The position numbers and the translations under genes were made by a program. The notes below the pieces were generated by a model. It was not told the origin of the DNA and did no database searches. It was given only the letters and a program-made list of their open reading frames with translations. A stretch of DNA of 64,000 nucleotides, taken from positions 168,932-232,931 of the IMG/VR virus record IMGVR_UViG_3300033984_000473; one strand, given 5' to 3'. Numbering within the stretch: the first letter of the stretch is position 1; every line of letters begins with the position of its first letter. Below are positions 1,041 to 51,820 of this stretch, one piece after another.

Positions 1041-1811
1041 TTAGTAATTTGAATATCTAAAGATTAATTTTCTTAATTTTGTGATAATGAAGTCTAAGGT
1101 TAAACCTACAACTACGATTATGATTTGCAATGCGATTACTTTACCAGCATCACCTAACTTATCATTGTTCTTGATAAGGAATCCAAGTCCACCAGCGGCC
1201 ACAAGGATAGATTCAACGGTTACAAGCATCATCCATACGATTGCCAAGTTTTGTCTAACCAACTCAAATACGTAGTCAATACGACCTTTGATTACAACTT
1301 CCCATAAACATTCCCATCTGCTGCAACCTAATGTCCTAGCGTGGTCGAATTCTTCTTCTGGAATATCTTTAATCATTTGCATAAGACTTGTGGTTAAGAA
1401 TGTTGTCATAAAAACAACAAGAACCCAGACTTGAAGTGTTCTAGCATCATTGATAAGAATTGCAATGTAAAATGCGATACCAGTCAAAGGTAGATATCTA
1501 AGCTTAGATATGAATGTACCAACTGGTTTAAAGAAAGGAATTGCAGATGAATAAGCAAACATAAGTGAAATCACGATGGAAATCATTACAGCTTGACTAC
1601 ATAACCAAATTGAACTTGCAATGTGAACGACCAACCCATCGGCCCAAAGGTCTTTTAACCCATGCAATACTTGTAGTGGTGTTGGGAAAAGGTGAGTATC
1701 ACCAAAACTGTTAAGTCCCCAAAACGTTAATAGAATTACTAACCATGATGTCAGTATTGTCGTTTTACTAGAACCTTTAAGATTCTCAAACGGTTTAAAT
1801 AATCTTTTCAT
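1041..1811 (-). CDS. ABC transporter permease (TauC/SsuC-like)
   Basis: Multiple TM segments, EAA-like loop DHARTLGCSR, GGLGFLI motif; adjacent to the ATPase. Confidence 0.9.
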   Translation of the reverse strand: MKRLFKPFENLKGSSKTTILTSWLVILLTFWGLNSFGDTHLFPTPLQVLHGLKDLWADGLVVHIASSIWLCSQAVMISIVISLMFAYSSAIPFFKPVGTFISKLRYLPLTGIAFYIAILINDARTLQVWVLVVFMTTFLTTSLMQMIKDIPEEEFDHARTLGCSRWECLWEVVIKGRIDYVFELVRQNLAIVWMMLVTVESILVAAGGLGFLIKNNDKLGDAGKVIALQIIIVVVGLTLDFIITKLRKLIFRYSNY

Positions 1812-2138
1812 TTAATCTTTTTTAAGTGTTAATTTATATGCTTCTCGGTCTTTAATCATTTTTTGTCTAAGTGCTTCCAAATCCACTTCTTTCTTTTTGG
1901 CTCTTGTAGAACCTTTAAAAGGTGTTCTTTCGATGATTGTGATTTGACGTTCAACTTTTACAATTGTTCTCATGCCATTCTTATCACCACATCTTTCTAA
2001 GATATCGGTAACACCATCAATAGTTTTGTAAGCTTTTGCTTTTAACTCATTATGAGTATAAGAAAATTCATAGTTTGGTTGCTCATCAGCATAAAAACCT
2101 TTATTTTCTACATGTCCTAAAAATCTAGTTTCTTTCAT
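1812..2138 (-). CDS. hypothetical protein
   Basis: 108-aa ORF with TACCTTTG promoter upstream. Confidence 0.6.
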   Translation of the reverse strand: MKETRFLGHVENKGFYADEQPNYEFSYTHNELKAKAYKTIDGVTDILERCGDKNGMRTIVKVERQITIIERTPFKGSTRAKKKEVDLEALRQKMIKDREAYKLTLKKD

Positions 2139-2259
2139 TTTTAAGTGTTTTATAATTTCTACCTAACAAAGGTACAACTAATATTTTATATAACCAAATA
2201 TTTTACATAAAAAAAATCCCTAACTATGTGTTAAGGATTTTTGTAAGTTTATGTTTCTG

Positions 2260-4074
2260 TTAGTTTAACAAAGTGATTTCCACTCGTCTGTTTTTAGCTT
2301 TACCACTAGCAGTGTTGTTATTAGCTACTGGGTTAGTATCACCTTTACCATCAACCAATTGGAAACGGTCTTTAGAAATACCTCTACCAGTTAAGTAATT
2401 TACTACTGAATTAGCACGACCTTTAGATAATGATAAGTTAGAATCAGAGTTACCAACGTTATCTGTGTGACCAACAATTCTCAATTTGGTTTGTTCAGCT
2501 TGTACTAGTAAGTTGTAGATTGCTTCTAAATCTTTTTCAGAACCAGCGATTTCTGAACTACCTGTTGCAAAGCTAATGTTCCATTGACCATCAGCCAATA
2601 CTTTAGTTTTAGTGTCAGTATAAGTTATTTTATCAGCTTTACCAGAAGCAACATCAGTTACCGATTTCAAGAAGTATAAATTAACCGCATCTTCGTAAGG
2701 TACAACACCATCTTTACATGTTTCATTAAAACCACATGGGTTCAAGTCAGTCAAGTAAACCGATACTTGGTTATAAACCGCTTTGTATCTGTTGTTACCA
2801 TCTGTGATTCCGTAGTATTGCATTGCATCAGCATAGTTAAACACTTTTGAACCACCGATATTGTAATCTAAACCATCTTTGGTACCTTTTTGACCTTTGA
2901 ATAAATCATACCAGTATTTAGGTGTTTCAAAGTCATATGTTTTAGCAACACATTCAGATGCTTTAACAGCCCACTCATCATATTGTTTGATTTGATTAGA
3001 AGCAGTATATGTTTGTTTCAATATATTAACAACTTCTTTCTCATGTTGCAATGCCCATTCTTTAATAACAACTAGTGTTGTTGCCATTTGGTTAACAAAT
3101 TCTTTAGTTGAAACTACATCGGTGAAACCACTCAAAGCATCGAAAGCCATTTTATCACCAGGAGTCCATGTAGTTGCCCCATCAATTTTGTGGTTAACTG
3201 TTTTACCAGTTAATTTACCATTCTCAACCACTTTTAAAGGAACAGTATAACCTGTTTTTTGTGACTTGATAAGTTCTTTCACAGAGTTGATGTAGTCATC
3301 GTCTTGTGATGGTACGAAGTTAATCGCATTAGCATCATAAGTACTTGGGTCTGGATTCACTGGAATCTTATTAGCAAAAGCATAGTTGATTGCAACAACC
3401 CAGTCACCATCACCGATTACAGAAGATATTACAGCACCTTTCATTGATTGTGGATTATCTTTCCAGATTTTTGGTCCGATTAATTTATCTTCACCATATG
3501 AAAGACCGTAAGCACCAATTACTTGTACGTGGTATTTACCTTTACCAAATTTTTCATCCAAAGCTTTTTGTGTAGTCGTAATATAGAACGGCACACCGTC
3601 ACCCATAATACTTACACCAAACGCTGATTTATCTGATACTGGATATTGAGCACCCTTAGAGAATTCCTCAACGAATTTTAATTGCATATCACGTAACCCA
3701 CCGACCATGTCTTGTCTTACGATTTCTAAGTTAACACCAGAAGCTTCCATAAGAGAACCTTGAGTTGTACGTGGACCACCGTTAGCCACAATCATACCAG
3801 CGTTACCATTCCATGCATATTCTGCAATACGGATAAGACCTTTGTTTGCTACAGCTGTTGATGGCTGATTAGACGGAGTTGGTAGCTTGGCACCACTCGT
3901 TACGTTGTTCAATTCATCAGTATTGATACTTAATGAAGTTAATTGCTTTGAAACAGCAACTCGTAATCCAGGTGATACGAAATAAACGATTCCTAATACG
4001 ATTGCTAGACCTAATGCTAAGATTGTCCCCTCAGCTAAGGTAGTTAATTTTGGTTGTTTGAAGATTGCTCCCAT
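2260..4074 (-). CDS. membrane-anchored substrate-binding protein fused to a C-terminal OmpA-like domain
   Basis: N-terminal TM helix; SBP-like core; OmpA_C motifs GHTDNVG, LSKGRA, NRRVEI. Confidence 0.85.
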   Translation of the reverse strand: MGAIFKQPKLTTLAEGTILALGLAIVLGIVYFVSPGLRVAVSKQLTSLSINTDELNNVTSGAKLPTPSNQPSTAVANKGLIRIAEYAWNGNAGMIVANGGPRTTQGSLMEASGVNLEIVRQDMVGGLRDMQLKFVEEFSKGAQYPVSDKSAFGVSIMGDGVPFYITTTQKALDEKFGKGKYHVQVIGAYGLSYGEDKLIGPKIWKDNPQSMKGAVISSVIGDGDWVVAINYAFANKIPVNPDPSTYDANAINFVPSQDDDYINSVKELIKSQKTGYTVPLKVVENGKLTGKTVNHKIDGATTWTPGDKMAFDALSGFTDVVSTKEFVNQMATTLVVIKEWALQHEKEVVNILKQTYTASNQIKQYDEWAVKASECVAKTYDFETPKYWYDLFKGQKGTKDGLDYNIGGSKVFNYADAMQYYGITDGNNRYKAVYNQVSVYLTDLNPCGFNETCKDGVVPYEDAVNLYFLKSVTDVASGKADKITYTDTKTKVLADGQWNISFATGSSEIAGSEKDLEAIYNLLVQAEQTKLRIVGHTDNVGNSDSNLSLSKGRANSVVNYLTGRGISKDRFQLVDGKGDTNPVANNNTASGKAKNRRVEITLLN

Positions 4075-4334
4075 TTTTAATTTTTGTTTTTAGTTTATAC
4101 TATTTAATTTTAACTCTACAAAGGTAGTTATAATTTTCGACACTACCAAATTTATTATGAATTATTTTTATTTTTTTTTTCGCTATCGGAGAAACTATCC
4201 TCATCGACCTAAAACTCTTTTAGCTACCATCTTACTTGTTTAGGCTCGGCCATCCCACTAATATAATTGTCCACTACTTCCAAATCAGATAATGAGTCAT
4301 GATTCTTACTCGAACAGTTTTTTTTAAATTTTTC

Positions 4335-11305: not shown

Positions 11306-11380
11306 TGTTGAGGAAGAGGGACTTGAACCCTACTCTACCACCCGTCTAGGTGGTCTTCTAACCAGTTAAAGTATTCCCCA
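11306..11380 (-). ncRNA. degenerate tRNA-like gene with 6-nt anticodon loop
   Basis: Cloverleaf with CCACC-TAGACG-GGTGG; anticodon not assignable. Confidence 0.5.
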
Positions 11381-13876: not shown

Positions 13877-13962
13877 TGTGACCAAGGTGAGACTCGAACT
13901 CACACTCCCTAATGGGAACCAGCTTCTTAGACTGGCGGGTCTACCAATTCCCCCACTCGGCC
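13877..13962 (-). tRNA. tRNA-Leu(AAG)
   Basis: Class II cloverleaf, loop CTAAGAA. Confidence 0.9.
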
Positions 13963-17062: not shown

Positions 17063-18274
17063 TTAAATGTTAGTTGCCGAGATTGGCAAGTTATAGAAAT
17101 CTCTTCTTATTGTTACTAAAAGTGCATCTACTAATCCTGGGTTTACCTTGTTTGGTAAATCAGATTTATCAAATACCTCGTCCATATTTGCTATGGCTTC
17201 ATCGGCCATGACAATCAACCCATCTAAATCAACTTCACCACGTCTAATCTTAAGAAGTTCTTCAGCATCTGGTCGTCTAACGATGATACCTTTACCTTCT
17301 CCGATTTCTGTAGCCATATTGATAAGTCGCATACAATGCATCATGTTCTTACCATCAATCTTTTGACCATGACCTTGAACTTCAACGTATCTGGTTACAT
17401 TTCTTTTATCTAACCATTCTTGGTATTCTTTAAAGTCTTTACAGTGCTCTGAATAACCATCTTTGTTATAAACGATTGTACTGATTGTTTTTTCACCTTT
17501 AGGAATACTAGAAAGACGTAGTTGATTTGAGATACCATAGTTAATGACCCCATCTTCATCTTCATGACCAGTGTTTACAAGTCCTTTATATCCAAGACCC
17601 ATTGGCTTACCAGCATCTTTTAGAACAGCCTTTCTTTGGTTGCGTTCTACTTCTGAAAATTTATCAGAGTGACACATTTCACCAACACTGTCATAAAATA
17701 AAGCATACGTATCCCTAGCGTTAGGTATGTTTACAGCACCTATGAATTTTTCATCGTACTTCCCAGAGTTCCATATTTTCCATGGAATTGATTTCTCACC
17801 TTCAAGTACATAACAGAAATCCAATAGGTCTTTACGAACTACTTTGTCCTGTTCCCAGTTTTGTTTCTTGTTAAGTCCTTTGGCTTTTTTGATTTGCTGT
17901 CTAGCGTAACCACCGAAAGAATCTTTACACGCTTTGGTGATGAAATCTTCCTTGTGAGCAATGATAATGTCAAACAAAGGGTTCTTTGTGACGATACAAT
18001 CTTCTGGACTGTTAAGGAGCTCAAGAACAGTTGGGTTGTTTGTACTCATAAGTTCTAAGAACCTTTTAAGTTCCCAACCCGTCCAATCTTTATTGATATT
18101 CAACTGTTCAACATATCCAGTACCCAAGATATTATCAATAGGCAAGATGTAAACGAATTTTTTATCCACATCAGACGTTGGTGTCTGCGTACCATAGGCT
18201 TGACTACCAATAATGCATTCAAAAAGAATCAATCCATTCTCTTTAAGGTAATCGTATGTAATTTTCTGTGTCAT
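17063..18274 (-). CDS. Pol-beta superfamily nucleotidyltransferase (YcgL/RlaP-like)
   Basis: GSQAYG..SDVD, NPTVLE, KNMMHCMRL. Confidence 0.85.
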   Translation of the reverse strand: MTQKITYDYLKENGLILFECIIGSQAYGTQTPTSDVDKKFVYILPIDNILGTGYVEQLNINKDWTGWELKRFLELMSTNNPTVLELLNSPEDCIVTKNPLFDIIIAHKEDFITKACKDSFGGYARQQIKKAKGLNKKQNWEQDKVVRKDLLDFCYVLEGEKSIPWKIWNSGKYDEKFIGAVNIPNARDTYALFYDSVGEMCHSDKFSEVERNQRKAVLKDAGKPMGLGYKGLVNTGHEDEDGVINYGISNQLRLSSIPKGEKTISTIVYNKDGYSEHCKDFKEYQEWLDKRNVTRYVEVQGHGQKIDGKNMMHCMRLINMATEIGEGKGIIVRRPDAEELLKIRRGEVDLDGLIVMADEAIANMDEVFDKSDLPNKVNPGLVDALLVTIRRDFYNLPISATNI

Positions 18275-18357
18275 ATTCTTAATTTTTAACAAAGGTATGT
18301 ATAATTTATTAAACTACCAAACATTTTTACATTTTAATTCCAGTAAGATAGATAAAT

Positions 18358-23330: not shown

Positions 23331-24623
23331 TTAATTTCCTATCTCAACCAAATGAGATACAGTACATTGTGAAGAATTATACACGATGTATTCGTTATTT
23401 TTTAAATCAGCACCACCTTTGGCAAATACAGAATCATAATCATCTTTTTTCAAGGCTGTGTGTGATAATGAATAACAACTAGAAGTATGATGAAGGATTT
23501 CCTTTTGATTACCCAAATGTACATCAAACAATGCTAAGAAAGCTTTATCATCACCACCTTTGGTCCAATAAGAACCTCTCAATGATGAATAACCGATTGA
23601 TTTCTGAGCTTTATCGGCAAAATAGATTCCATCTCCAAACATAGAACCAGTATGAACTGCACCAGAAGGTCTGATAAGTAACCCAGTTTGTAAAATGTTA
23701 AACCAGTTCTCATTTCTAGAACCATGCCAGTAAAGTCTTCTTTTCTTAACCTTAGCAGTTTCATAGTTCTTATCAAATATTTTTTGGGTTTTATTATTAA
23801 CCACCTTGAATACTCTTTTGACTTGATGTGCGTTAGGTCCCATAAGTTTCGTAACCAAAGCAAGTGTTTCTTTATCTTCCTCAACTTCAACACTAAGACC
23901 CATTTGGTCAAGTATAGTAACTTGGTCAACATGTTCTTCTTCTGGAGCTTCAGCTATTGCTTTTTGTTGTTTAAGTAGTTGTACTTGTCCAGCCATTGTA
24001 TCTAGTGTAGATTGTTCTTGACCAATGAATTTCTGAGCATTTTCAAGTGCTTTGGCATCATTAATTTCGTTTACAAGGTAATCACGTACATTATCCATTC
24101 TTCTAGGGATAATTGTATATAATTTAAGTAACATATCATTAACCAATTTCTTATCCACATCTAGAACCATGATAGCACTAATTCTATCTATGATTTCTTG
24201 GGCGGCAAGTACTTGTTGCTCAGATACAGCATCTTGCGTTACTTTATAATTTCTTTGAATAGATTTGTTTGCAAATGACATTAATTCATCGATAAGCTTT
24301 TTAACAGCTGAGTTTTTGATTTCTTCAGTTTTTTGTGCAGTCGCTGCTTTGGTTGCATCGTCAATAACTGGTTCTGCTAGGAATTCAGTTACATCAGTAT
24401 AACCTTTTTTATCAGAAGTTTTCTCTCTAAGGATTTTATCCCATTCATGTCTAGATTTGAATACTGTAGTCATATTTTTACCTACTCTACCATATTCACA
24501 TTGTATTCTACCATCGGAAAGTTCTTCCATGATATAAACCTTGTTACTATTGTCGGTCATTCCGTTATCAATAGAAACATGTACTAATTTAGCGTATCTT
24601 AAACCGTTTTCTTTTGTTATCAT
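23331..24623 (-). CDS. poly(ADP-ribose) polymerase (WGR + regulatory + catalytic domains)
   Basis: YGRVG, LYTIIP, WHGSR, MFGDGIYFAD..KS.GY, NEYIVY (H-Y-E triad). Confidence 0.9.
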   Translation of the reverse strand: MITKENGLRYAKLVHVSIDNGMTDNSNKVYIMEELSDGRIQCEYGRVGKNMTTVFKSRHEWDKILREKTSDKKGYTDVTEFLAEPVIDDATKAATAQKTEEIKNSAVKKLIDELMSFANKSIQRNYKVTQDAVSEQQVLAAQEIIDRISAIMVLDVDKKLVNDMLLKLYTIIPRRMDNVRDYLVNEINDAKALENAQKFIGQEQSTLDTMAGQVQLLKQQKAIAEAPEEEHVDQVTILDQMGLSVEVEEDKETLALVTKLMGPNAHQVKRVFKVVNNKTQKIFDKNYETAKVKKRRLYWHGSRNENWFNILQTGLLIRPSGAVHTGSMFGDGIYFADKAQKSIGYSSLRGSYWTKGGDDKAFLALFDVHLGNQKEILHHTSSCYSLSHTALKKDDYDSVFAKGGADLKNNEYIVYNSSQCTVSHLVEIGN

Positions 24624-26877: not shown

Positions 26878-28374
26878 TTATTTTGCTTTTAGCGTTTTAG
26901 CCATATTTTCAATTTCAATACATGATTCAAGTGTATCACATGTATCTTTGTCAGTTCTTAACTCAACAATCGATGGATGTTGTGTTGACCAACCCTTGTC
27001 AGTTTCTGAAAGACCACAACATCTAATTTGCACAACAGTACCCATTAGTTCGTCTTGTCTAGCAGTAACATCAGCCATCATAGCTTCAGTCATTCCACCA
27101 GGAGCAGTCTTCAATTTACCACACTCACTTTCCAATTGCAATACTGATATTACGTTCTCATTCTTGGTACCTTTGGCACCATAATTGAATCCGATGATTC
27201 TTAAATCCATATCCATCTCAAGTTTCATCTTGATTTGGTATGTTGGTTTACCATCCTTCCAACCAGCAGAAGCTTGTTTGATTATAGTTCCTTCTAGACC
27301 TCTATTTTGAGTATCCATGAAGTGTTCCATCGCTTCCTCATAAGTTCTAATGAATCTTGTTTCGATAAGGTCAACTTGGTCATGACTTTGCCCTTCAAGT
27401 CTTTTTCTAAGTGTGTTGTATCTTTCGTGGTATTCAGTGTCAGATTTAAAAGCGAAATACTCATCAACGCTAATCATATCCCAAACTGTAAATCTTAACT
27501 TATCCAAAGCATCAGCCATCGGCCCATGTTTATCTTCAAATGCTGCAACTTTCTTCGCAGTTTCAACTTCACCTCTTTCGTCAGCTTTCTCAACGATATC
27601 CATGATAGAGTTTACCATACCATTGGCAATTGTTCTTTTAACACCATCAATCGTTAACTCGCCATTAAGCACACAATCTTCCAATTGAGATAGTTCTTCT
27701 AAAAATTTGGCACCAGTAAGTGTAGATACTTCACCTTGTCTAGAAATCAATTCAACTTCACCACTTCTTATGATGGCGTTACGATATGTTCCATCAGCTT
27801 TCACTTGTGACATAACCGCTTTACCTTTCTCGAATAACTTAATAGCACCTTTCTCAGAGAATGACTTAGCACCTTGATATGGAGTTTCTTCAATCAATTT
27901 GGGTATAACTTTGTTGATTCCAGAATCCATTCCGATTTTAAGGTTCTTATCTATGATACGCTCAATAACATAAGCATCGTCAGCATCTAAATAAGATAAG
28001 ATATTTAATAAGAAATCGGTAGCTGAAGCACCAGTATAAGTTCTATCAGAAAGACGAGTCAATTCTTCTATCGATTCTGCTAATGTTAGTGTTGTTTCAA
28101 CATTAGAGTATTGTGGAATCTGTTTGATATAGAATTTGATTCTAGGTGAATGAGCCAAATAGATTACTCTTTTTAACAACTCATTATCTTTGTATTTTGA
28201 TAAGACTTTTATCTTATCATTTTTACCACCAACAGCAGCAATTTCATCAAGGATGTTTTTGATTGTCATTTTTGGGTGTTTTTTTTGGTACTCAGCTTTA
28301 GCTTTTTCCATGTTTTTCATTTCGAATTCGTGTATAGAAGCTTCTGCTCTATCGTTTTTCCAATCTTCACTCAT
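26878..28374 (-). CDS. lig: ATP-dependent DNA ligase
   Basis: KADG motif I, LNGEL, EGTIIK, KMK, OB fold. Confidence 0.9.
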   Translation of the reverse strand: MSEDWKNDRAEASIHEFEMKNMEKAKAEYQKKHPKMTIKNILDEIAAVGGKNDKIKVLSKYKDNELLKRVIYLAHSPRIKFYIKQIPQYSNVETTLTLAESIEELTRLSDRTYTGASATDFLLNILSYLDADDAYVIERIIDKNLKIGMDSGINKVIPKLIEETPYQGAKSFSEKGAIKLFEKGKAVMSQVKADGTYRNAIIRSGEVELISRQGEVSTLTGAKFLEELSQLEDCVLNGELTIDGVKRTIANGMVNSIMDIVEKADERGEVETAKKVAAFEDKHGPMADALDKLRFTVWDMISVDEYFAFKSDTEYHERYNTLRKRLEGQSHDQVDLIETRFIRTYEEAMEHFMDTQNRGLEGTIIKQASAGWKDGKPTYQIKMKLEMDMDLRIIGFNYGAKGTKNENVISVLQLESECGKLKTAPGGMTEAMMADVTARQDELMGTVVQIRCCGLSETDKGWSTQHPSIVELRTDKDTCDTLESCIEIENMAKTLKAK

Positions 28375-28379
28375 AATTT

Positions 28380-28544
28380 TTATTTTGTTGTTAAATAATA
28401 AAACCCAACTACTATAATTCCTAGTATGATTACAGTTGCAATAAGGCAACCACAACCACGTTTGTCATTTTTAGATTCTGAAGCGGTTTCAACCCCAGCT
28501 TCAATCACACCTACTATTAGTTCTCCGATTATTTCGTGTGGCAT
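28380..28544 (-). CDS. small membrane protein (54 aa)
   Basis: MPHEIIGEL..GCGCLIATVIILGIIVVGFYYL; promoter upstream. Confidence 0.55.
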   Translation of the reverse strand: MPHEIIGELIVGVIEAGVETASESKNDKRGCGCLIATVIILGIIVVGFYYLTTK

Positions 28545-33896: not shown

Positions 33897-36800
33897 ATGG
33901 CAGACCAAAAAATTAGTCAGTTACCTTCGGGTACATTATACCCACAAACAATATTTCCTATTGTCACTTTGGGTACAACATCACAAACAACATTTGCTAA
34001 TTTAGCAAATGCTTTATCATTAGTTATTACTGGTGGTACTGGTACTAGTACTGGTACAACAATTACAGCAATGACATTTAATCAAGGTACTTACGATTTA
34101 ACTGTAGACCAAAATGATGGAACTAGCTTTACTCAAAACTTTGGTATTTTAGCTACAGATATGACTGTAACTGGTGGTACTTATGACATGATGACTGGTA
34201 TTGTTCAATTCACCAACAATAGTGGTGGAACATTTAGTGTAACTGGTTTTGCTGTTGGTGCTACTGATACTGTAATTACCAACGTGTCTTTTGACCCAAC
34301 AACTAAATTTTTAACTATTGATGATTCTGCTGGTAACAGTTTTAACACATCGATTAATGATTTTAACGGATTAAATGTTATCGGTAGCTTGTCTGCTACA
34401 ACATTCTATGGTGATGGTTCACATCTTACTGGAATTCCAGTTGGAACAGGTGGTACGGTTACTGGTGCTTATTTACCATTATCTGGTGGTACAATGGAAT
34501 CTAATGCGGATATTATTTTTGCTAATGGTTCAATACTTAGTGAAGGAACAATAGATGCTGGTACTGGTGGTGCTAAGGGTTTAGCTCAAATTTGTAGTAT
34601 TGGTTATGAATTGAAATGGGAAGCTGGAAGGTTATACATCATGAACCAAGGTGGTACACAAATTAGAGAAGTTAAGTATCAATTATTTTATAACCCAAGT
34701 AACACTGATGACGATACGAAAGGGTTTTATGTTGGTAGTAGATGGGTATTAGATAACGGAAATGTTTATGTTTGTACTGATGCTACAACTGGAAACGCTA
34801 TTTGGGAATTAAAATTCACTGAAGCTAATGTTAGTGCAATGACATTTAATCAAGGCACTTATGACCTTACAATCAATCAAACTGATGGAACTAGCTTTAC
34901 TCAAAGTTTAGGTGTCTTGGCTACAGATATGACTGTAACTGGTGGTACATATGATTTTAACACTGGTATTGTTGAATTTGTCAATAATAGTGGTGGTACA
35001 TTTAACGTTACTGGTTTTGCTAGTGGTTTAACAGATTCAACAATCGCTAACTTTACATACAACAATGCAAATACTTTTACAATTACAGACACAACAGGTG
35101 GTACTTTCAACGCTTTATTTAATACCGTTACTGGATTAACTGTTAGTGGTAGCTTATCAGCAACAACTTTCTATGGTGATGGTAGCAATCTTACTGGTAT
35201 TGCTGGTGGTGCTAGTGTATTTACTGTTGGTTCTAGTGGGACTTTATCAATCAAAGCTAACAACCCAACAACTAACGCTGTTGGTAACTATTCATTCGCT
35301 AATAACTTTACTACAACTGCTAGAGGTAACTATTCTGTTGCTCAAAATGAAAGTAGTTATGCATTGGGTCAAGGTTCTCATGCTGAAGGTAGACAAACAA
35401 ATGCTATTGGTGTTGCAAGTCATGCTGAAGGTTTTAGAACATATGCTGGTGATAAATATTTCCCAGTAATTACTGCAACTGGTAAAACACTTATAGTCGG
35501 ACCAACCAACGTTGATTTTAGTGCAGATTTTACACCTACTGGATATCTAATTTCAGATGCTTATTATACTTACCAATATACTGGATATACTTATTCAGCA
35601 CCTAACTTTACATTCGGATTAACTGTAACTGGTTTTAGTGGTACTAGAGTAGTTGATAGTCAATTTAGAACTAGTCTTTTAACACCTTTTTCTAGTGGTC
35701 AAAATTCACACGCTGAAGGTAATAGTTCTAAGGCAATTGGCTCTGCCAGTCATGCTGAAGGTGCTGGAAGTATAGCTTACGGTAATAATTCACACGCTGA
35801 AGGTAATGGTACTGTTGCTAGTGGTTTAACATCACATGCTGAAGGTTATGGTGGATTTGCTATTGGTAATTATTCACATGCTGAAGGTTATTATACTCAA
35901 GCTAAAGGTAGTTATTCACACGCTGAAGGTATTTCATCATACGCTAACGGTACTGCCAGTCACGCTGAGGGTAGTAATAATTTAGCTAGTGGTGAATATT
36001 CACACGCTGAAGGTAATATGACAAAAGCTACTATGTATAACGCTCACGCTGAAGGTCAGCAAACAACAGCTTCTGGTTGGTCATCTCACGCTGAAGGTTA
36101 TTATAGTATTGCTGGTGGTGATTATTCACACGCTGAAGGTTATAATACAAGAGCTAATAGAACTTCAACACATGCTGAAGGTTATGGAGCACAAGCCCTT
36201 GGGAATGCCACTCACGCTGAAGGTTATGGGTCATTAGCCATTGCTGATAATTCACATGCTGAAGGTGAAGTAACTAAATCTGGTAATTATTATTTAGGTA
36301 TTGATTCTACTGTTGGTAATGCTATTTATATTTCTGACGATGTTGATTATTCAACTACATTTTCACCATTTGGTGGTACTGCTATAATTGATGGTAAACG
36401 TTATAATTATTCGGCATCTTCATTTAGTTCACCAAACTTTATTGTTTATTTAGATGATACTGTTTTAAGTTCACCAGCTTTGATTTCAGACCTAAGTAAT
36501 TTAGTACCGTATGATTGGGGTAATGTGGCTATATTTGGTCAAAGTTCACATGCTGAAGGTAATTCTACAATAGCTATTGGTGACTCGAGTCATGCTGAAG
36601 GTACTTTAACAATAGCTGGTGGTAATTATAGTCACGCTGAAGGTAATGGGACACAATCTGTTGGTACATATTCACATGCTGAAGGTTATCAAACTGAAGC
36701 TTTTGGTATGTATTCACACGCTGAAGGTAATTATTCAGTAGCTCGTGGTGATGGAAGTCATGCTGAGGGTAACGGTACACTTGCTAGTGGTACTGGTAGT

Positions 36801-37124
36801 CATGCTGAAAATAACTACACTAAAGCTTATGGTGCTGCTAGTCACGCTGGTGGTGTTCTATCTATTGCAAATGGTTACATGTCTTTTGTACATGGTAATA
36901 AATCAGAAGCTAATAGTACAACTACTGTTGTGTTGGGTGACAACATAACTGGTAATACAGCTAATACAATTTATGTTTCAGATTTAGTAATCAAAAAAGC
37001 GGCAGCGGTTCCTACAAGTTCAGCTGATGCTATTGGTGAAATCGGTTCTGTAACATGGGACGCTACTAACTTCTACTGGAAAACAGCTGGTGGTTGGTTA
37101 AAAGTATCTGGTTCAACTTTCTAA
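33897..37124 (+). CDS. tail fibre / adhesin with SHAEG repeats
   Basis: MADQKISQL start, internal duplication, >25 14-aa SHAEG beta-roll repeats. Confidence 0.85.
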   Translation: MADQKISQLPSGTLYPQTIFPIVTLGTTSQTTFANLANALSLVITGGTGTSTGTTITAMTFNQGTYDLTVDQNDGTSFTQNFGILATDMTVTGGTYDMMTGIVQFTNNSGGTFSVTGFAVGATDTVITNVSFDPTTKFLTIDDSAGNSFNTSINDFNGLNVIGSLSATTFYGDGSHLTGIPVGTGGTVTGAYLPLSGGTMESNADIIFANGSILSEGTIDAGTGGAKGLAQICSIGYELKWEAGRLYIMNQGGTQIREVKYQLFYNPSNTDDDTKGFYVGSRWVLDNGNVYVCTDATTGNAIWELKFTEANVSAMTFNQGTYDLTINQTDGTSFTQSLGVLATDMTVTGGTYDFNTGIVEFVNNSGGTFNVTGFASGLTDSTIANFTYNNANTFTITDTTGGTFNALFNTVTGLTVSGSLSATTFYGDGSNLTGIAGGASVFTVGSSGTLSIKANNPTTNAVGNYSFANNFTTTARGNYSVAQNESSYALGQGSHAEGRQTNAIGVASHAEGFRTYAGDKYFPVITATGKTLIVGPTNVDFSADFTPTGYLISDAYYTYQYTGYTYSAPNFTFGLTVTGFSGTRVVDSQFRTSLLTPFSSGQNSHAEGNSSKAIGSASHAEGAGSIAYGNNSHAEGNGTVASGLTSHAEGYGGFAIGNYSHAEGYYTQAKGSYSHAEGISSYANGTASHAEGSNNLASGEYSHAEGNMTKATMYNAHAEGQQTTASGWSSHAEGYYSIAGGDYSHAEGYNTRANRTSTHAEGYGAQALGNATHAEGYGSLAIADNSHAEGEVTKSGNYYLGIDSTVGNAIYISDDVDYSTTFSPFGGTAIIDGKRYNYSASSFSSPNFIVYLDDTVLSSPALISDLSNLVPYDWGNVAIFGQSSHAEGNSTIAIGDSSHAEGTLTIAGGNYSHAEGNGTQSVGTYSHAEGYQTEAFGMYSHAEGNYSVARGDGSHAEGNGTLASGTGSHAENNYTKAYGAASHAGGVLSIANGYMSFVHGNKSEANSTTTVVLGDNITGNTANTIYVSDLVIKKAAAVPTSSADAIGEIGSVTWDATNFYWKTAGGWLKVSGSTF

Positions 37125-45368: not shown

Positions 45369-46529
45369 TTATTTGTTTAATAATTGTTTAAAGTTTTCAG
45401 TTTCCATTTGTTGAATCCTTTGACCCAACTCTGGTCCAGGTTTTAAGTCTGTATCCATCATTACTTCTGGTCCCGTAACTGTTAACTGAAACTTTAAGAA
45501 TGCGTCTAATAACTTAGAGTCAATTCCACGCAATTTGCCAAACATTTTAATCTGCTCTGGAGTTACACCAGCGTGCTTCTCAGCTTTTTTAAGTGTTACA
45601 GCTGTATCTACTGATAATTGTAACAAAGCAATTAAAAATGTTATTGCTTTTACTTCTTCTGCTGAGTATTTCAAGTTGTTTAGTTGTTTTCTCAAAGAAT
45701 CTAAGTTGTTTCTTTTCAATATCGTAGCAATTACGATTATTGGGTCGTTATTCTCAACAAAATCCTTATCAACTGCCAATCCATTGAAAACCCAGTCGAA
45801 CAATTTGTAACCATCAATCATTTGTAAGAATTTCTTAACCGATTTTGCCGAAGCAATACCTTTAAGGAATTCATCACGAATTCTCTCACCAGAAATACCC
45901 TCAAGACTAGCATCTTTAACCAACGCAGCGTGTGTATCTGGGTCTAAGTCACTTCCGAACCTTCCAGCAAATCTAATCGCTCTAAGGATACGCAAACGGT
46001 CTTCACCAAATCTATCTTCAGCAGCACCTACAGTTCTTACTATACCTTTTTTAAGGTCATCTACACCACCAACTAGGTCAACTATTTCATGTGTATCAAT
46101 ATCGTAAAACAAAGCGTTAATTGTAAGGTCACGTCTTTTAACATCACCAGCGATATCCGTAAAGCTAACAGCATCTGGTCGTCTACCACCAGACAAATCT
46201 TCACGGAATGTTGCCACTTCGTATTCGCCTTGGTCTGTAAACACATTGATTACACCAAAAGACTTACCTGTTGGTAAAGTTTTCAATCCAGCGTGTTTCA
46301 TCATTTCTTCTACTTTGTCTGGGACAGCATCGGTTGCTAAGTCGTAATCTTTAGGAGTTTTACCTAACAAAGCATCACGCACAGCACCACCTACAACATA
46401 CAACTTAAAACCGTTCGTTTTAAAAACGTCTTTGATTCCTTGTATATCTTCTGGGATTGGAATATCGAATTTGATTCGCTGTTCCATTATCTGCCCTTCT
46501 CTTAGTATTTGTCTAATCTCATTTTTCAT
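45369..46529 (-). CDS. cca: CCA-adding tRNA nucleotidyltransferase
   Basis: VGGAVRD..KDYD, RRDLTINA, EDRLRILRAIRF, ERIRDE. Confidence 0.92.
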   Translation of the reverse strand: MKNEIRQILREGQIMEQRIKFDIPIPEDIQGIKDVFKTNGFKLYVVGGAVRDALLGKTPKDYDLATDAVPDKVEEMMKHAGLKTLPTGKSFGVINVFTDQGEYEVATFREDLSGGRRPDAVSFTDIAGDVKRRDLTINALFYDIDTHEIVDLVGGVDDLKKGIVRTVGAAEDRFGEDRLRILRAIRFAGRFGSDLDPDTHAALVKDASLEGISGERIRDEFLKGIASAKSVKKFLQMIDGYKLFDWVFNGLAVDKDFVENNDPIIVIATILKRNNLDSLRKQLNNLKYSAEEVKAITFLIALLQLSVDTAVTLKKAEKHAGVTPEQIKMFGKLRGIDSKLLDAFLKFQLTVTGPEVMMDTDLKPGPELGQRIQQMETENFKQLLNK

Positions 46530-49166: not shown

Positions 49167-49241
49167 TGTAGTTCTAGTCGGACTCGAACCGACATTTCTC
49201 CGTTTTAGAGGCGGGCGTATTCACGTTAATACTATAGAACC
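49167..49241 (-). tRNA. amber suppressor-type tRNA (CTA)
   Basis: Loop CTCTAAA; anticodon stem has two C-A mismatches; D loop lacks GG; own promoter at ~49252. Confidence 0.75.
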
Positions 49242-50929: not shown

Positions 50930-51078
50930 TATCTTCTTCTATTACTATTGTTATTATTCATCATAAACATTATAACGAACACAAATAAAAATGCACTCAT
51001 ATTTTTTAATACAAATGTACTATTTATTTTTCAATTATGCAAGTTCTAAACAAAAAAAGTCCCGAAAGGGACTTTTAA

Positions 51079-51757
51079 TTATGAGAGTAAATCAATTTTA
51101 CCTCGGAGTATGTCTTTAAGACTAGCTGTCTTATTAGTTATGTGGTCTACAACCAAAGAATCTTTAACTCTATATGTTCTACGTTTGTCGCTTCTATCAC
51201 CTTTGCCGATTTGGTCTCTTCGCTCTTCTACGCTTTCTTCTAAGTGTCCAGTTCTATAAAAATCATTCACACGCTTTTTAAGCTCTTTTAAGGCATCTTC
51301 TTTGTTCTTGTGTTGATTTCTACCATCACGAACTACTTTTAACCCTGTGGTGATGTGTGTGACCACTACGCATGAATCTGTTGTGTTCTTGTGTTGTCCA
51401 CCGTTCCCAGTCCCTCTAGTTGTTTCTAAACGATATTCGCTGGGATATAGTTCTATCTCTTGATAATCGTTTTCTTCCATAAGGGCTACTGTAATTGAAC
51501 TGGTATGAACACGTCCCTTCTTTTCAGTTGGTGGGACTCTTTGCCAACGATGATTTCCTACTTCATTCTGGAATATCTCTTTTACCTTTGGGCCGCTAAA
51601 GACATAGATGGGCAAAGCCGCTTCTTTCTTCGACTACGCTGCATTCTAAATTGTTAAGTCTTGCCGTTTTGGTGTAGATGTCAAGCATCTCTTTCACCAA
51701 CAGCTTCGCATCTGTTCCACCTTCCGCATCACGGATTTCTAAATGAATTTTTCCCAT
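51079..51757 (-). CDS. RF1-type peptide release factor lacking domain 1, split by a +1 frameshift at CTT-TAG-C
   Basis: Frame 0 MGKIHLEIRDAEGGTDAKL...CL* (51757-51596); +1 frame ..HRWQRVPPTEKKGRVHTS..GGQHKN..RRTY. Confidence 0.85.
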
Positions 51758-51783: not shown

Positions 51784-51810
51784 AAAAAACCCCATCGATT
51801 GATAGGGCTT
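51784..51810 (-). terminator. terminator upstream of the RF gene
   Basis: AAAGCCCTATC-AATC-GATGGGGTTTTTTT. Confidence 0.7.
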
Positions 51811-51820
51811 TGATGATTTC

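Follow-up and report, generated by a model that had tools for sequence, protein, structure and literature searches.

A CUU UAG C site predicted to direct +1 frameshifting in a phage RF1-like gene, and a family of stop-gated release factor homologs without domain 1

Gene organization of the release factor locus

The window analyzed in this work is the final 64 kb of the 233-kb IMG/VR jumbo-phage contig IMGVR_UViG_3300033984_000473, and the release factor gene is located on its minus strand, as are all other features for which coordinates are given below. The gene is divided between two reading frames. ORF1 (51599..51757) begins with an ATG codon at 51757-51755 and comprises 53 codons of frame 0, from Met to a CTT-encoded Leu; the peptide opens with MGKIHLEIRDAEGGTDAKLL, contains the alpha-5 tip motif LEIRDAEGGTDA, closes with HLCL, and corresponds to the N-terminal part of release factor domain 2. 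Frame 0 ends within the heptamer CTT TAG C (51595..51601), composed of CTT at 51601-51599, TAG at 51598-51596 and C at 51595, so that the UAG gate codon (51596..51598) is followed by C, a weak termination context. The +1-frame segment (51079..51597) reads TTT AGC GGC at the junction, encodes Ser54 and 171 further residues, and terminates at TAA (51081-51079). It matches the RF-1 and PCRF domains of Pfam and the NCBIfam prfA model, and encodes the end of domain 2, the PPT tripeptide (51534-51526, within RVPPTE / RVPPTEKKGRVHTSS), the GGQ domain (GGQ at 51402-51394, within GNGGQH), and domain 4. The elements on which the initial annotation was built, namely a frame 0 ending in CTT TAG C and a +1 frame carrying PPT and GGQ, are thus all present in the sequence.

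The change of frame is confined to a 39-nt interval between the final upstream +1-frame stop, a TAG at 51634..51636 read from the sequence, and the frame-0 TAG; no +1-frame ATG occurs inside this interval. A frame-0 TGA (51563..51565) lies 11 codons beyond the UAG, so simple readthrough would give a 64-aa dead-end product, and no homology was found in frame 0 after the TAG. The product predicted for a +1 shift consists of 53 residues, Ser and 171 residues, which makes 225 aa, as the initial annotation had estimated, compared with 225–228 aa in continuous homologs. In Pfam, ORF1 covers positions 102–143 of the PCRF profile, whereas the +1 piece covers positions 164–194 together with the RF-1 domain (E 6e-24), so that a single domain is cut by the frame change. 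The gene is flanked by two terminator-like hairpins with T-runs, one in the interval that separates a tRNA-Met gene from the release factor gene, about 28 nt ahead of the start codon (51786..51811), and another immediately downstream of the TAA (51055..51076).

It should be noted that the heptamer alone is not rare, since the window contains 14 copies of CTTTAGC versus about 6 expected, and the chance of finding one phased copy in the 39-nt overlap is roughly 1 in 1000. The evidential weight is comparative and comes from the retention of CTTTAGC at the junction in diverged homologs.

Type of the encoded release factor

The continuous 225-aa homolog P0004 scores 193–202 bits against the NCBIfam prfA model (cut-off 400–423), compared with 109 bits for prfB and 77 bits for prfH (TIGR03072; cut-off 166.65), and the +1 piece of the window gene itself reaches 166–173 bits with prfA. 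A sequence search of PDB returned Thermotoga maritima RF1 (residues 86–314) with an E-value of 6e-42, RF2 with about 1e-24, and PrfH with 4e-12. An AlphaFold model of P0004 (mean pLDDT 77) was used in a fold search, where the top matches were ribosome-bound RF1 chains with 36–37% identity. The alignment to RF1 begins at RF1 residue 86–111, which indicates the absence of domain 1. The Gln, the P-x-T pattern (as PPT), the Glu, the His and the Thr of the decoding loop are all kept, as is GGQ. From these scores and matches, the protein is RF1-like over domains 2–4 and lacks domain 1, in agreement with the initial annotation on both points.

By these sequence criteria the window product is assigned to the RF1 type but not to the prfA equivalogs, being 225 aa long compared with about 360 aa and scoring below the curated cut-off. 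The tripeptide is PPT in the window gene and SPT in a few members of the family. The alpha-5 tip has the form GG-x-D, whereas both RF1 and RF2 have a Glu at this place that reads U1, and this difference counts against the explanation that we prefer. UAG reading by the product is predicted from its motifs, a prediction made less certain by the Asp in the alpha-5 tip and by the PPT tripeptide.

Conservation and selection at the junction

A protein search yielded 906 relatives of the window gene, whose called lengths fall into three clusters: continuous proteins of 225–228 aa, C-terminal pieces of 177–187 aa, and proteins of 133–160 aa. About 35 of the best 120 protein clusters open with the +1-frame peptide ...Y[VA]FSG and represent the 177–187-aa C-terminal pieces. 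Among 110 viral and metagenomic loci with frames assigned by tblastn, a +1 junction at the window position was found in 18 distinct flanking sequences, with protein identity to the window gene ranging from 100% down to 52%. The alignment of homologs proposed in the initial annotation shows CTTTAGC at the junction in 17 of these 18 distinct phage and metagenome sequences, and the eighteenth (L025) has CTTTGAC. The flanks of the site vary freely, and the codon before CTT is TGT, TGC or TAT. In contrast, the junction Leu codon is CTT in all 19 frameshifted genes, compared with only 2 of 66 continuous genes, and the codon after the slip is invariably AGC, or GAC in the TGA variant.

Among the frameshifted genes, the pN/pS ratio is about 0.2–0.4 both for the N-terminal part in frame 0 and for the C-terminal part in the +1 frame, versus about 1 for the N-terminal part read in the +1 frame. 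These genes are separated by a pS of 0.5–0.8, i.e., their synonymous divergence is near-saturated. Both halves of the gene are thus under purifying selection, each in its own frame. In one relative, L037, the frame is not broken at this spot, and its sequence CTT AGC GGT (L-S-G) is the predicted trans-frame junction. The frameshifted genes are dispersed across a tree built from the C-terminal parts, a pattern that requires 4 to 11 changes of state.

For any isolated frame break of this kind, one would have to consider that the T-run was misassembled or that the gene is a decaying pseudogene, because one extra T in TTT would suffice and L037 reads CTT AGC. However, the extra base is shared by 18 distinct sequences of phages and metagenomes that derive from different samples and were produced by different assemblers, and is also found in complete or isolate genomes of Minicystis rosea, Nannocystis species, Thiobacillus denitrificans, Achromobacter anxifer and Pyxidicoccus fallax, while a pseudogene is contradicted by the selection acting on both halves. 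The invariant heptamer, the selection, the L037 sequence and the scattered tree together exclude an assembly error, a pseudogene or a recent accident, and we regard this explanation as hardly credible. The comparisons demonstrate split frames, a selected heptamer, colinearity with continuous homologs and an RF1-like fold. The site CTT TAG C is under selection, and reading the gene in full requires the prfB-style +1 shift at CUU UAG C that the initial annotation had proposed.

Genetic code of the phage

We considered whether TAG or TGA might be a sense codon in this phage. In-frame TAG or TGA codons are absent from the minus-strand genes of the 64-kb window. Phage recoding (code 15 or code 4) was tested by ORF merging and by alignment of the window proteins to 15 syntenic loci of 6–21 kb, and was rejected, the sole in-frame matches being antisense or out-of-frame shadows rather than real genes. 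The syntenic relatives provide 1,100–4,300 aligned residues each without in-frame stops, and encode Trp by TGG 13–36 times and never by TGA. A comparison of coding density on 6.5-kb loci was too noisy for use. Reading of the TAG as a sense codon (code 15), with a phage tRNA(CUA) decoding it in frame and no frameshift taking place, could draw on the presence of such a tRNA gene in the window. Nevertheless, frame 0 ends 11 codons later in a homology-free segment, the homology runs in the +1 frame, and neither the minus-strand genes of the window nor the syntenic genes of relatives have in-frame TAG codons; we consider this explanation refuted by the sequence. TAG recoding was also rejected for L025, the relative with CTT TGA C, as its long genes contain no internal TAG.

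Many continuous relatives have in-frame stop codons of their own. At the gate positions of 66 distinct continuous phage genes there are 113 TGA and no TGG codons, whereas Trp in the C-terminal 171 residues of the same genes is always encoded by TGG. Around five relatives with two TGA codons in the release factor gene, the real genes of the 20-kb neighbourhood contain no in-frame TGA or TAG. The in-frame-TGA form also occurs in standard-code bacteria, namely Variovorax and Cupriavidus. These TGA codons are thus probably not explained by plain genetic code 4. The standard-code neighbours and the TGA-only gate positions indicate that the stops belong to the release factor gene and not to the genome region (20–64 kb examined). 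Selenocysteine insertion, suggested by an exchange between TGA and TGY, was rejected because both a conserved hairpin and a tRNA-Sec are absent; it is further weakened by the alignment of the first in-frame TGA site with Trp in RF1.

tRNA genes, neighbours and stimulatory elements

The window contains 31 tRNA genes according to ARAGORN. One of them, of the amber-suppressor type with the anticodon CUA (49168..49241; Rfam tRNA score 50.6 bits), is located 1.9 kb downstream of the release factor gene, and a tRNA(CUA) gene is kept 1–3 kb downstream in many relatives. Its anticodon arm is similar to that of the phage tRNA-Trp(CCA). This tRNA probably competes for the UAG of the gate. The presence of an amber suppressor beside an RF1-like gene is a paradox, which we count against our preferred explanation. 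The window also has a gene for tRNA-Leu(AAG) (13878..13962), which is cognate to CUU and might be the slipping tRNA. Other translation- and RNA-related genes in the neighbourhood include those for RlaP and a CCA-adding enzyme in the window, and in relatives a phage tmRNA gene adjoins the release factor gene.

The tRNA(CUA) could in principle read UAGC as a four-base codon, which would give the identical frame and product length with no need for slippage in the P site. The synteny of the tRNA with the gene and the conservation of TAGC are in line with such decoding. However, the anticodon loop of the tRNA has the normal 7 nt (CUCUAAA), and four-base reading does not require the CTT codon, which is invariant. 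Moreover, the bacterial relatives share the sites, with TGA as well as TAG, and phage relatives with an in-frame TGA, for which a shift is unneeded, also keep the tRNA. Four-base decoding is accordingly very improbable.

As stated in the initial annotation, the site has no internal Shine-Dalgarno sequence: none was found within 15 nt upstream of CTT, either in the window or at the other phage sites at this position. RNAalifold predicted no conserved RNA pairs at the site, and an Rfam scan for structured elements returned tRNAs only. At this site, shift efficiency may be low for lack of a stimulatory element, a point against our preferred explanation. Only 3 of 61 window genes are preceded by an SD-like 4-mer, and the window genes show a Bacteroidia-like enrichment of A at positions -12, -11 and -3. 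The host type therefore appears to be SD-less, and an SD-less shift site fits a host that does not use Shine-Dalgarno sequences. SD-less prfB sites give about 7% frameshifting in Flavobacterium johnsoniae (PMC10798248).

Distribution of the family and its stop-codon gates

By its sequence, the window gene is a member of a larger, previously unrecognized family of RF1-like genes without domain 1 that extends over phages and bacteria. No relative above 45% identity was found among GenBank phages; the huge-phage genomes LR745206, LR756504 and LR756501 contain the gene in its in-frame-TGA form, where it is unannotated. Among bacteria, scanned with one genome per GTDB species, PPT-type genes without domain 1 were found in Nannocystis species, Minicystis rosea (complete genome), Pyxidicoccus fallax and Kofleriaceae, as well as in Thiobacillus denitrificans, Achromobacter anxifer, Novimethylophilus, Variovorax, Planctomycetota and Acidobacteriota.

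The shift site occupies at least three positions in the family. A second position, about 17 codons upstream of the window site, is used in two distant metagenomic genes, L106 and L110, whose sites are GGGAG CAT CTT TAG T and AGAGGGGA CTT TAG C, respectively, both with a Shine-Dalgarno-like sequence. The same position is used in 68 bacterial genomes with +1 sites of the form CTTT(GA/AG)N, usually with GGAGG or GGGAG 3–4 nt upstream. These sites are CTTTGAC in 38 genomes, CTTTAGC in 20, CTTTGAG in seven, CTTTAGG in two and CTTTGAA in one, and eight more bacterial genomes have an in-frame TGA without a shift. A third position is found in Betaproteobacteria.

We further compiled a census of the gates over the 168 loci where both halves of the gene could be placed, out of 205 loci examined overall. 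A +1 site is present in 85 of the 168 loci, namely CTT TGA N in 47 and CTT TAG N in 38, and an in-frame TGA or TAG is present in 82, with TGA alone in 76 and TAG plus TGA in six. The one remaining locus, L139, has no stop; together with L195 (CTT GAC, stop-free), which lies outside the census set, it is one of only two ungated loci among the 205. TAA never serves as a gate codon in the 168 loci. The initial annotation would have been contradicted by homologs that are simply continuous; nearly all of the continuous ones bear TGA or TAG in frame, and many lineages have the frameshifted form. Closely related genes can differ in having a UGA or a UAG gate, as is seen within Kofleriaceae and in the pair L025 and L088. 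Members of the two gate classes share identical decoding motifs, and the only protein column that co-varies with TAG versus TGA gates is the codon made by the site itself, Ser (AGC) versus Asp (GAC).

A further explanation is that the gene is truly split, with translation of the C-terminal part (about 175 aa) starting independently of the 53-aa peptide; the two products would then either cooperate, or only the C-terminal one would be relevant. This is how gene callers and RefSeq annotate such loci, and a TTG codon is available in the +1 frame at 51615. For example, the Variovorax plasmid copy appears in RefSeq as two genes, the first for a hypothetical protein of 56 aa and the second for a 'peptide chain release factor-like protein'; the recoding has thus gone unrecognized in annotation. 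On the other hand, no start codon is conserved in the +1 frame, relatives vary in their called N-termini, the cut falls within the beta-sheet of domain 2, and a split would leave the invariant CTT-stop-C and its three positions unexplained. We find two independent genes very hard to reconcile with these data.

With about even odds, this large family of stop-gated RF1-like factors without domain 1 may serve as a general sensor of termination capacity and a back-up for it, in which completion of the protein would, for nearly every member, require failed termination at UGA or UAG, and which in phages would be coupled to a tmRNA and an amber-suppressor tRNA. If so, the family would extend over jumbo phages, Myxococcota, Pseudomonadota, Planctomycetota, Acidobacteriota and other phyla, the route of failure would be either readthrough or a prfB-like +1 slip invented at no fewer than three positions, and the phage members would take over or buffer host termination.

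Proposed mechanism

For the window gene, we propose that programmed +1 frameshifting at CUU UAG C yields a 225-aa RF1-like factor and that the UAG gate senses termination capacity, a reading to which we assign a probability of roughly 0.7. A ribosome with peptidyl-tRNA-Leu on CUU and UAG in the A site would have three possible fates. Termination at UAG by an RF1-type activity would release the 53-aa peptide; decoding of UAG by the phage tRNA(CUA) would lead to the stop 11 codons on; and re-pairing of the P-site tRNA-Leu from CUU to UUU would let translation proceed through AGC-GGC in the +1 frame to the full factor. By analogy with prfB, a stop codon in the A site in the weak +4 C context would be decoded slowly and leave time for the slip. 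Competition among the three fates implies that output should rise when UAG decoding is slow, and the yield would be lowered by anything that speeds up UAG decoding, including host RF1, the phage factor if it reads UAG, and the tRNA(CUA). The slip at the prfB CUU-stop-C site reportedly competes with termination, and with suppressor tRNAs if the stop is changed (Craigen and Caskey in 1986, Curran and Yarus in 1988). Both slippage at the window site and its response to RF1 are inferred here from the sequence.

Since the RF1-type decoding and catalytic motifs are kept, the product probably feeds back on its own gate, much as RF2 acts on prfB. This gate would have to be a target of host RF1 and of the amber suppressor as well. 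The initial annotation went further and held that the stop in the shift site was chosen to match the specificity of the factor itself. This does not hold for the family, where 47 UGA shift sites stand against 38 UAG sites with identical decoding motifs. As UGA gates are at least as frequent as UAG gates, a match between gate and specificity is not general, and self-feedback is put forward here as a proposal: autoregulation through UAG is plausible for the window gene but is no rule of the family. The mismatch between gates and motifs may be explained in three ways: both stops are read by the factor, the status of host RF1 or RF2, and not the activity of the factor itself, is what the gate reports, or the gate does no more than set a low yield.

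In an alternative that takes up the last two options, frameshifting does take place but no autoregulatory loop operates through the gate, which provides instead a constitutive low yield or a readout of host RF1/RF2 only; the factor would then serve a purpose other than routine termination, such as PrfH-like rescue of damaged or stalled ribosomes within a module for RNA repair and translation take-over. PrfH (RF-H) is an RtcB-associated release factor homolog that rescues damaged ribosomes. The interchange of UGA and UAG gates against constant decoding motifs speaks for a gate without a loop, and a rescue role would be in keeping with the lack of domain 1, as in PrfH, with the location of the Novimethylophilus homolog directly downstream of a Pnkp-like kinase-phosphatase-RNA ligase, and with the RlaP, CCA-adding enzyme, 31 tRNAs and adjoining tmRNA described above. 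Conversely, the set of RF1-type decoding residues (Q, PxT-like, E, H, T) is complete, unlike in PrfH, and the similarity to RF1 is well above that to PrfH (202 versus 77 bits). No RtcB was found among the scanned window ORFs (a part of all ORFs) or in six sampled bacterial loci, and the sampled bacterial loci revealed no other fixed partner. A gate of this kind combined with a rescue function is in our view unlikely, and programmed frameshifting with a UAG gate that senses termination capacity remains our preferred reading.

Comparison with known systems

The closest precedent for such a device is prfB, which encodes RF2 and is autoregulated by a programmed +1 frameshift at CUU UGA C. The window heptamer has the same CUU-stop-C architecture with a predicted slip of tRNA-Leu from CUU to UUU, joins a short frame-0 ORF to a long +1 ORF in a class I release factor gene, and has the weak +4 C context. 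The resemblance extends to the GGAGG or GGGAG located 3–4 nt upstream in the bacterial relatives, L106 and L110. The E. coli prfB site reads AGGGGG UAU CUU UGA C, and the L190 site, GGGGC TAT CTT TGA C, is close to it. The window gene differs from prfB in encoding an RF1-like rather than an RF2 protein and in using UAG rather than UGA. Its site lies at codon 54 in domain 2 instead of near codon 26 in domain 1 and has no Shine-Dalgarno stimulator, and within its family shift sites with either UGA or UAG occur alongside genes that simply have one of these stops in frame. With RF1 (prfA), the window product shares aligned domains 2, 3 and 4, the QRVP-x-TE..GR.HTS loop and GGQ, but it lacks the first ~105 residues (domain 1), scores at about half the cut-off (202 versus 400), and has the PPT/SPT tripeptide, an Asp for the Glu of the alpha-5 tip, and a stop-codon gate. 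PrfH is similar in its size of about 200–230 aa, in the absence of domain 1, in the GGQ domain and, for one bacterial family member, in the location beside an RNA-repair enzyme; in contrast to PrfH, the window family keeps the stop-codon reading residues of RF1, and its similarity to PrfH is far weaker.

To our knowledge, prfB has so far been the sole release factor gene with programmed frameshifting. A 2025 survey of prfB motifs found TAG in 0 of 8,164 genomes, and programmed frameshifting is not known for prfA (PMC12421855). Within an incomplete coverage of the literature, where an earlier report is possible, we found neither this family nor an RF1-type frameshift described; the family is likewise not described in the 2016 recoding review or the GeneTack cluster paper. 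The mechanism itself is the already known CUU-stop-C slip, and as far as we can tell the new elements are the gene family, the use of UAG, the several positions and the interchange with readthrough. The family would represent a second release factor family with a frameshift device, one that uses both UAG and UGA at multiple positions and interchanges frameshifting with readthrough. It also offers a natural experiment on the evolution of +1 sites and on what their stop codon senses, and it points to an annotation gap, as current annotations either divide its genes into two ORFs or apply code 4 to them.

Among phages, the most similar arrangement is the 'code change module' of Borges et al., in which RF1 is found in TGA-recoded Jade phages and RF2 in TAG-recoded Lak and Agate phages, and whose genes, including those of Jade phages, are reported to be in the standard code (bioRxiv 10.1101/2021.08.26.457843). 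The window likewise has a class I release factor beside a suppressor tRNA in a tRNA-rich translation module. It differs in pairing an RF1-type factor with a tRNA(CUA), a would-be competitor, and in that the 20–60 kb around window-type genes are in the standard code, with in-frame stops in the release factor gene only. This arrangement poses a question for phage biology, namely the reason for an RF1-like factor beside an amber suppressor tRNA in jumbo phages.

In-frame stops and frameshift sites in phage relatives

In one clade of phage relatives of the RF1-like gene (loci L020, L021, L024, L080, L083, L084 and L093), the gene carries an in-frame TAG, within ATT TAG CTG ACA GGT at approximately locus position 2992, at a codon that is TGA in related genes. 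An additional in-frame TGA lies further upstream in the same clade, and these genes do not involve a frameshift. The family was also found in three published huge-phage genomes of 635–735 kb, LR745206.1, LR756504.1 and LR756501.1 (L207, L208 and L209, respectively), where in-frame TGAs occupy the same sites in the gene; the database records of these genomes are unannotated.

The two sites that are in-frame TGA in relatives correspond to positions 51610–51602 and 51649–51641 of the window (minus strand). Among the standard-code frameshifted genes, cysteine (TGT or TGC) is found at both of these positions and tryptophan (TGG) at neither. The first of them aligns with a conserved tryptophan of canonical RF1.

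RF1-like genes in bacterial genomes

RF1-like genes lacking domain 1 were also identified in bacterial genomes from GTDB (loci L126–L205, e.g., L152, L198, L138, L190 and L140), where the +1 site is CTT TGA C or CTT TAG C and is preceded by a Shine-Dalgarno-like sequence. The recoding of these bacterial genes appears to be absent from their annotation. The RF1-like gene on the plasmid NZ_LR594690.1 of Variovorax sp. WDL1 (L206, 4779–5483), an organism with the standard genetic code, is interrupted by an in-frame TGA; RefSeq annotates the part before it as a CDS for a hypothetical protein of 56 aa and the part after it as a second CDS, for a 'peptide chain release factor-like protein'. In Novimethylophilus kurashikiensis, a kinase–phosphoesterase–T4-type RNA ligase fusion (L175, 563–2776), which is a Pnkp-like RNA repair enzyme, is encoded directly upstream of the RF1-like gene. 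Finally, three contigs with close relatives of the phage gene (L126, L127 and L128; 65–69% identity) were assigned to MAGs of Aenigmatarchaeota, Methanobacterium and Bacteroidetes, and are probably mis-binned phage contigs.

tRNA and tmRNA genes near the RF1-like gene

The RF1-like gene is followed, 1–3 kb downstream, by a tRNA gene with the amber-suppressor-type anticodon CUA, both in the window (49168–49241, minus strand) and in loci L003, L004, L008–L011, L015, L017, L019, L112, L114, L117, L119, L121 and L123; tRNA-Cys(GCA) is often its neighbour. tRNA(CUA) has A as its discriminator base and an anticodon arm almost identical to that of the phage tRNA-Trp(CCA). The neighbouring genes showed no in-frame TAG. 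Several relatives encode a phage tmRNA 2–3 kb upstream of the RF1-like gene (L002, 897–1270; L015, 169–523; L017, 567–921; L019, 322–676; also L121, L122 and L123); the window has no tmRNA gene.

Possible host signature and other genes of the window

TAA is the stop codon of 57 of the 64 long minus-strand ORFs in the 64-kb window. Shine-Dalgarno sequences are absent from the start regions, where positions −12, −11 and −3 are rich in A; this pattern resembles that of Bacteroidia and points to a Bacteroidota host. Other minus-strand genes encode a CCA-adding enzyme with a PolyA_pol head (45369–46529), an RlaP RNA-repair-pathway nucleotidyltransferase (17063–18292), an ATP-dependent ligase (26878–28455), a PARP-catalytic-domain protein (23331–24623) and an OmpA-domain protein (2260–4074), and the plus strand encodes a 1075-aa protein with YadA-head repeats (33897–37124).

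The window contains 31 tRNA genes in three minus-strand arrays. ARAGORN assigned a four-base anticodon (agac) to a tRNA-like gene at 11307–11380 (minus strand), the loop of which, read by eye, could alternatively be a 7-nt loop with the anticodon AGA. A comparable anticodon oddity (ccta) was observed in locus L018 (1334–1410).
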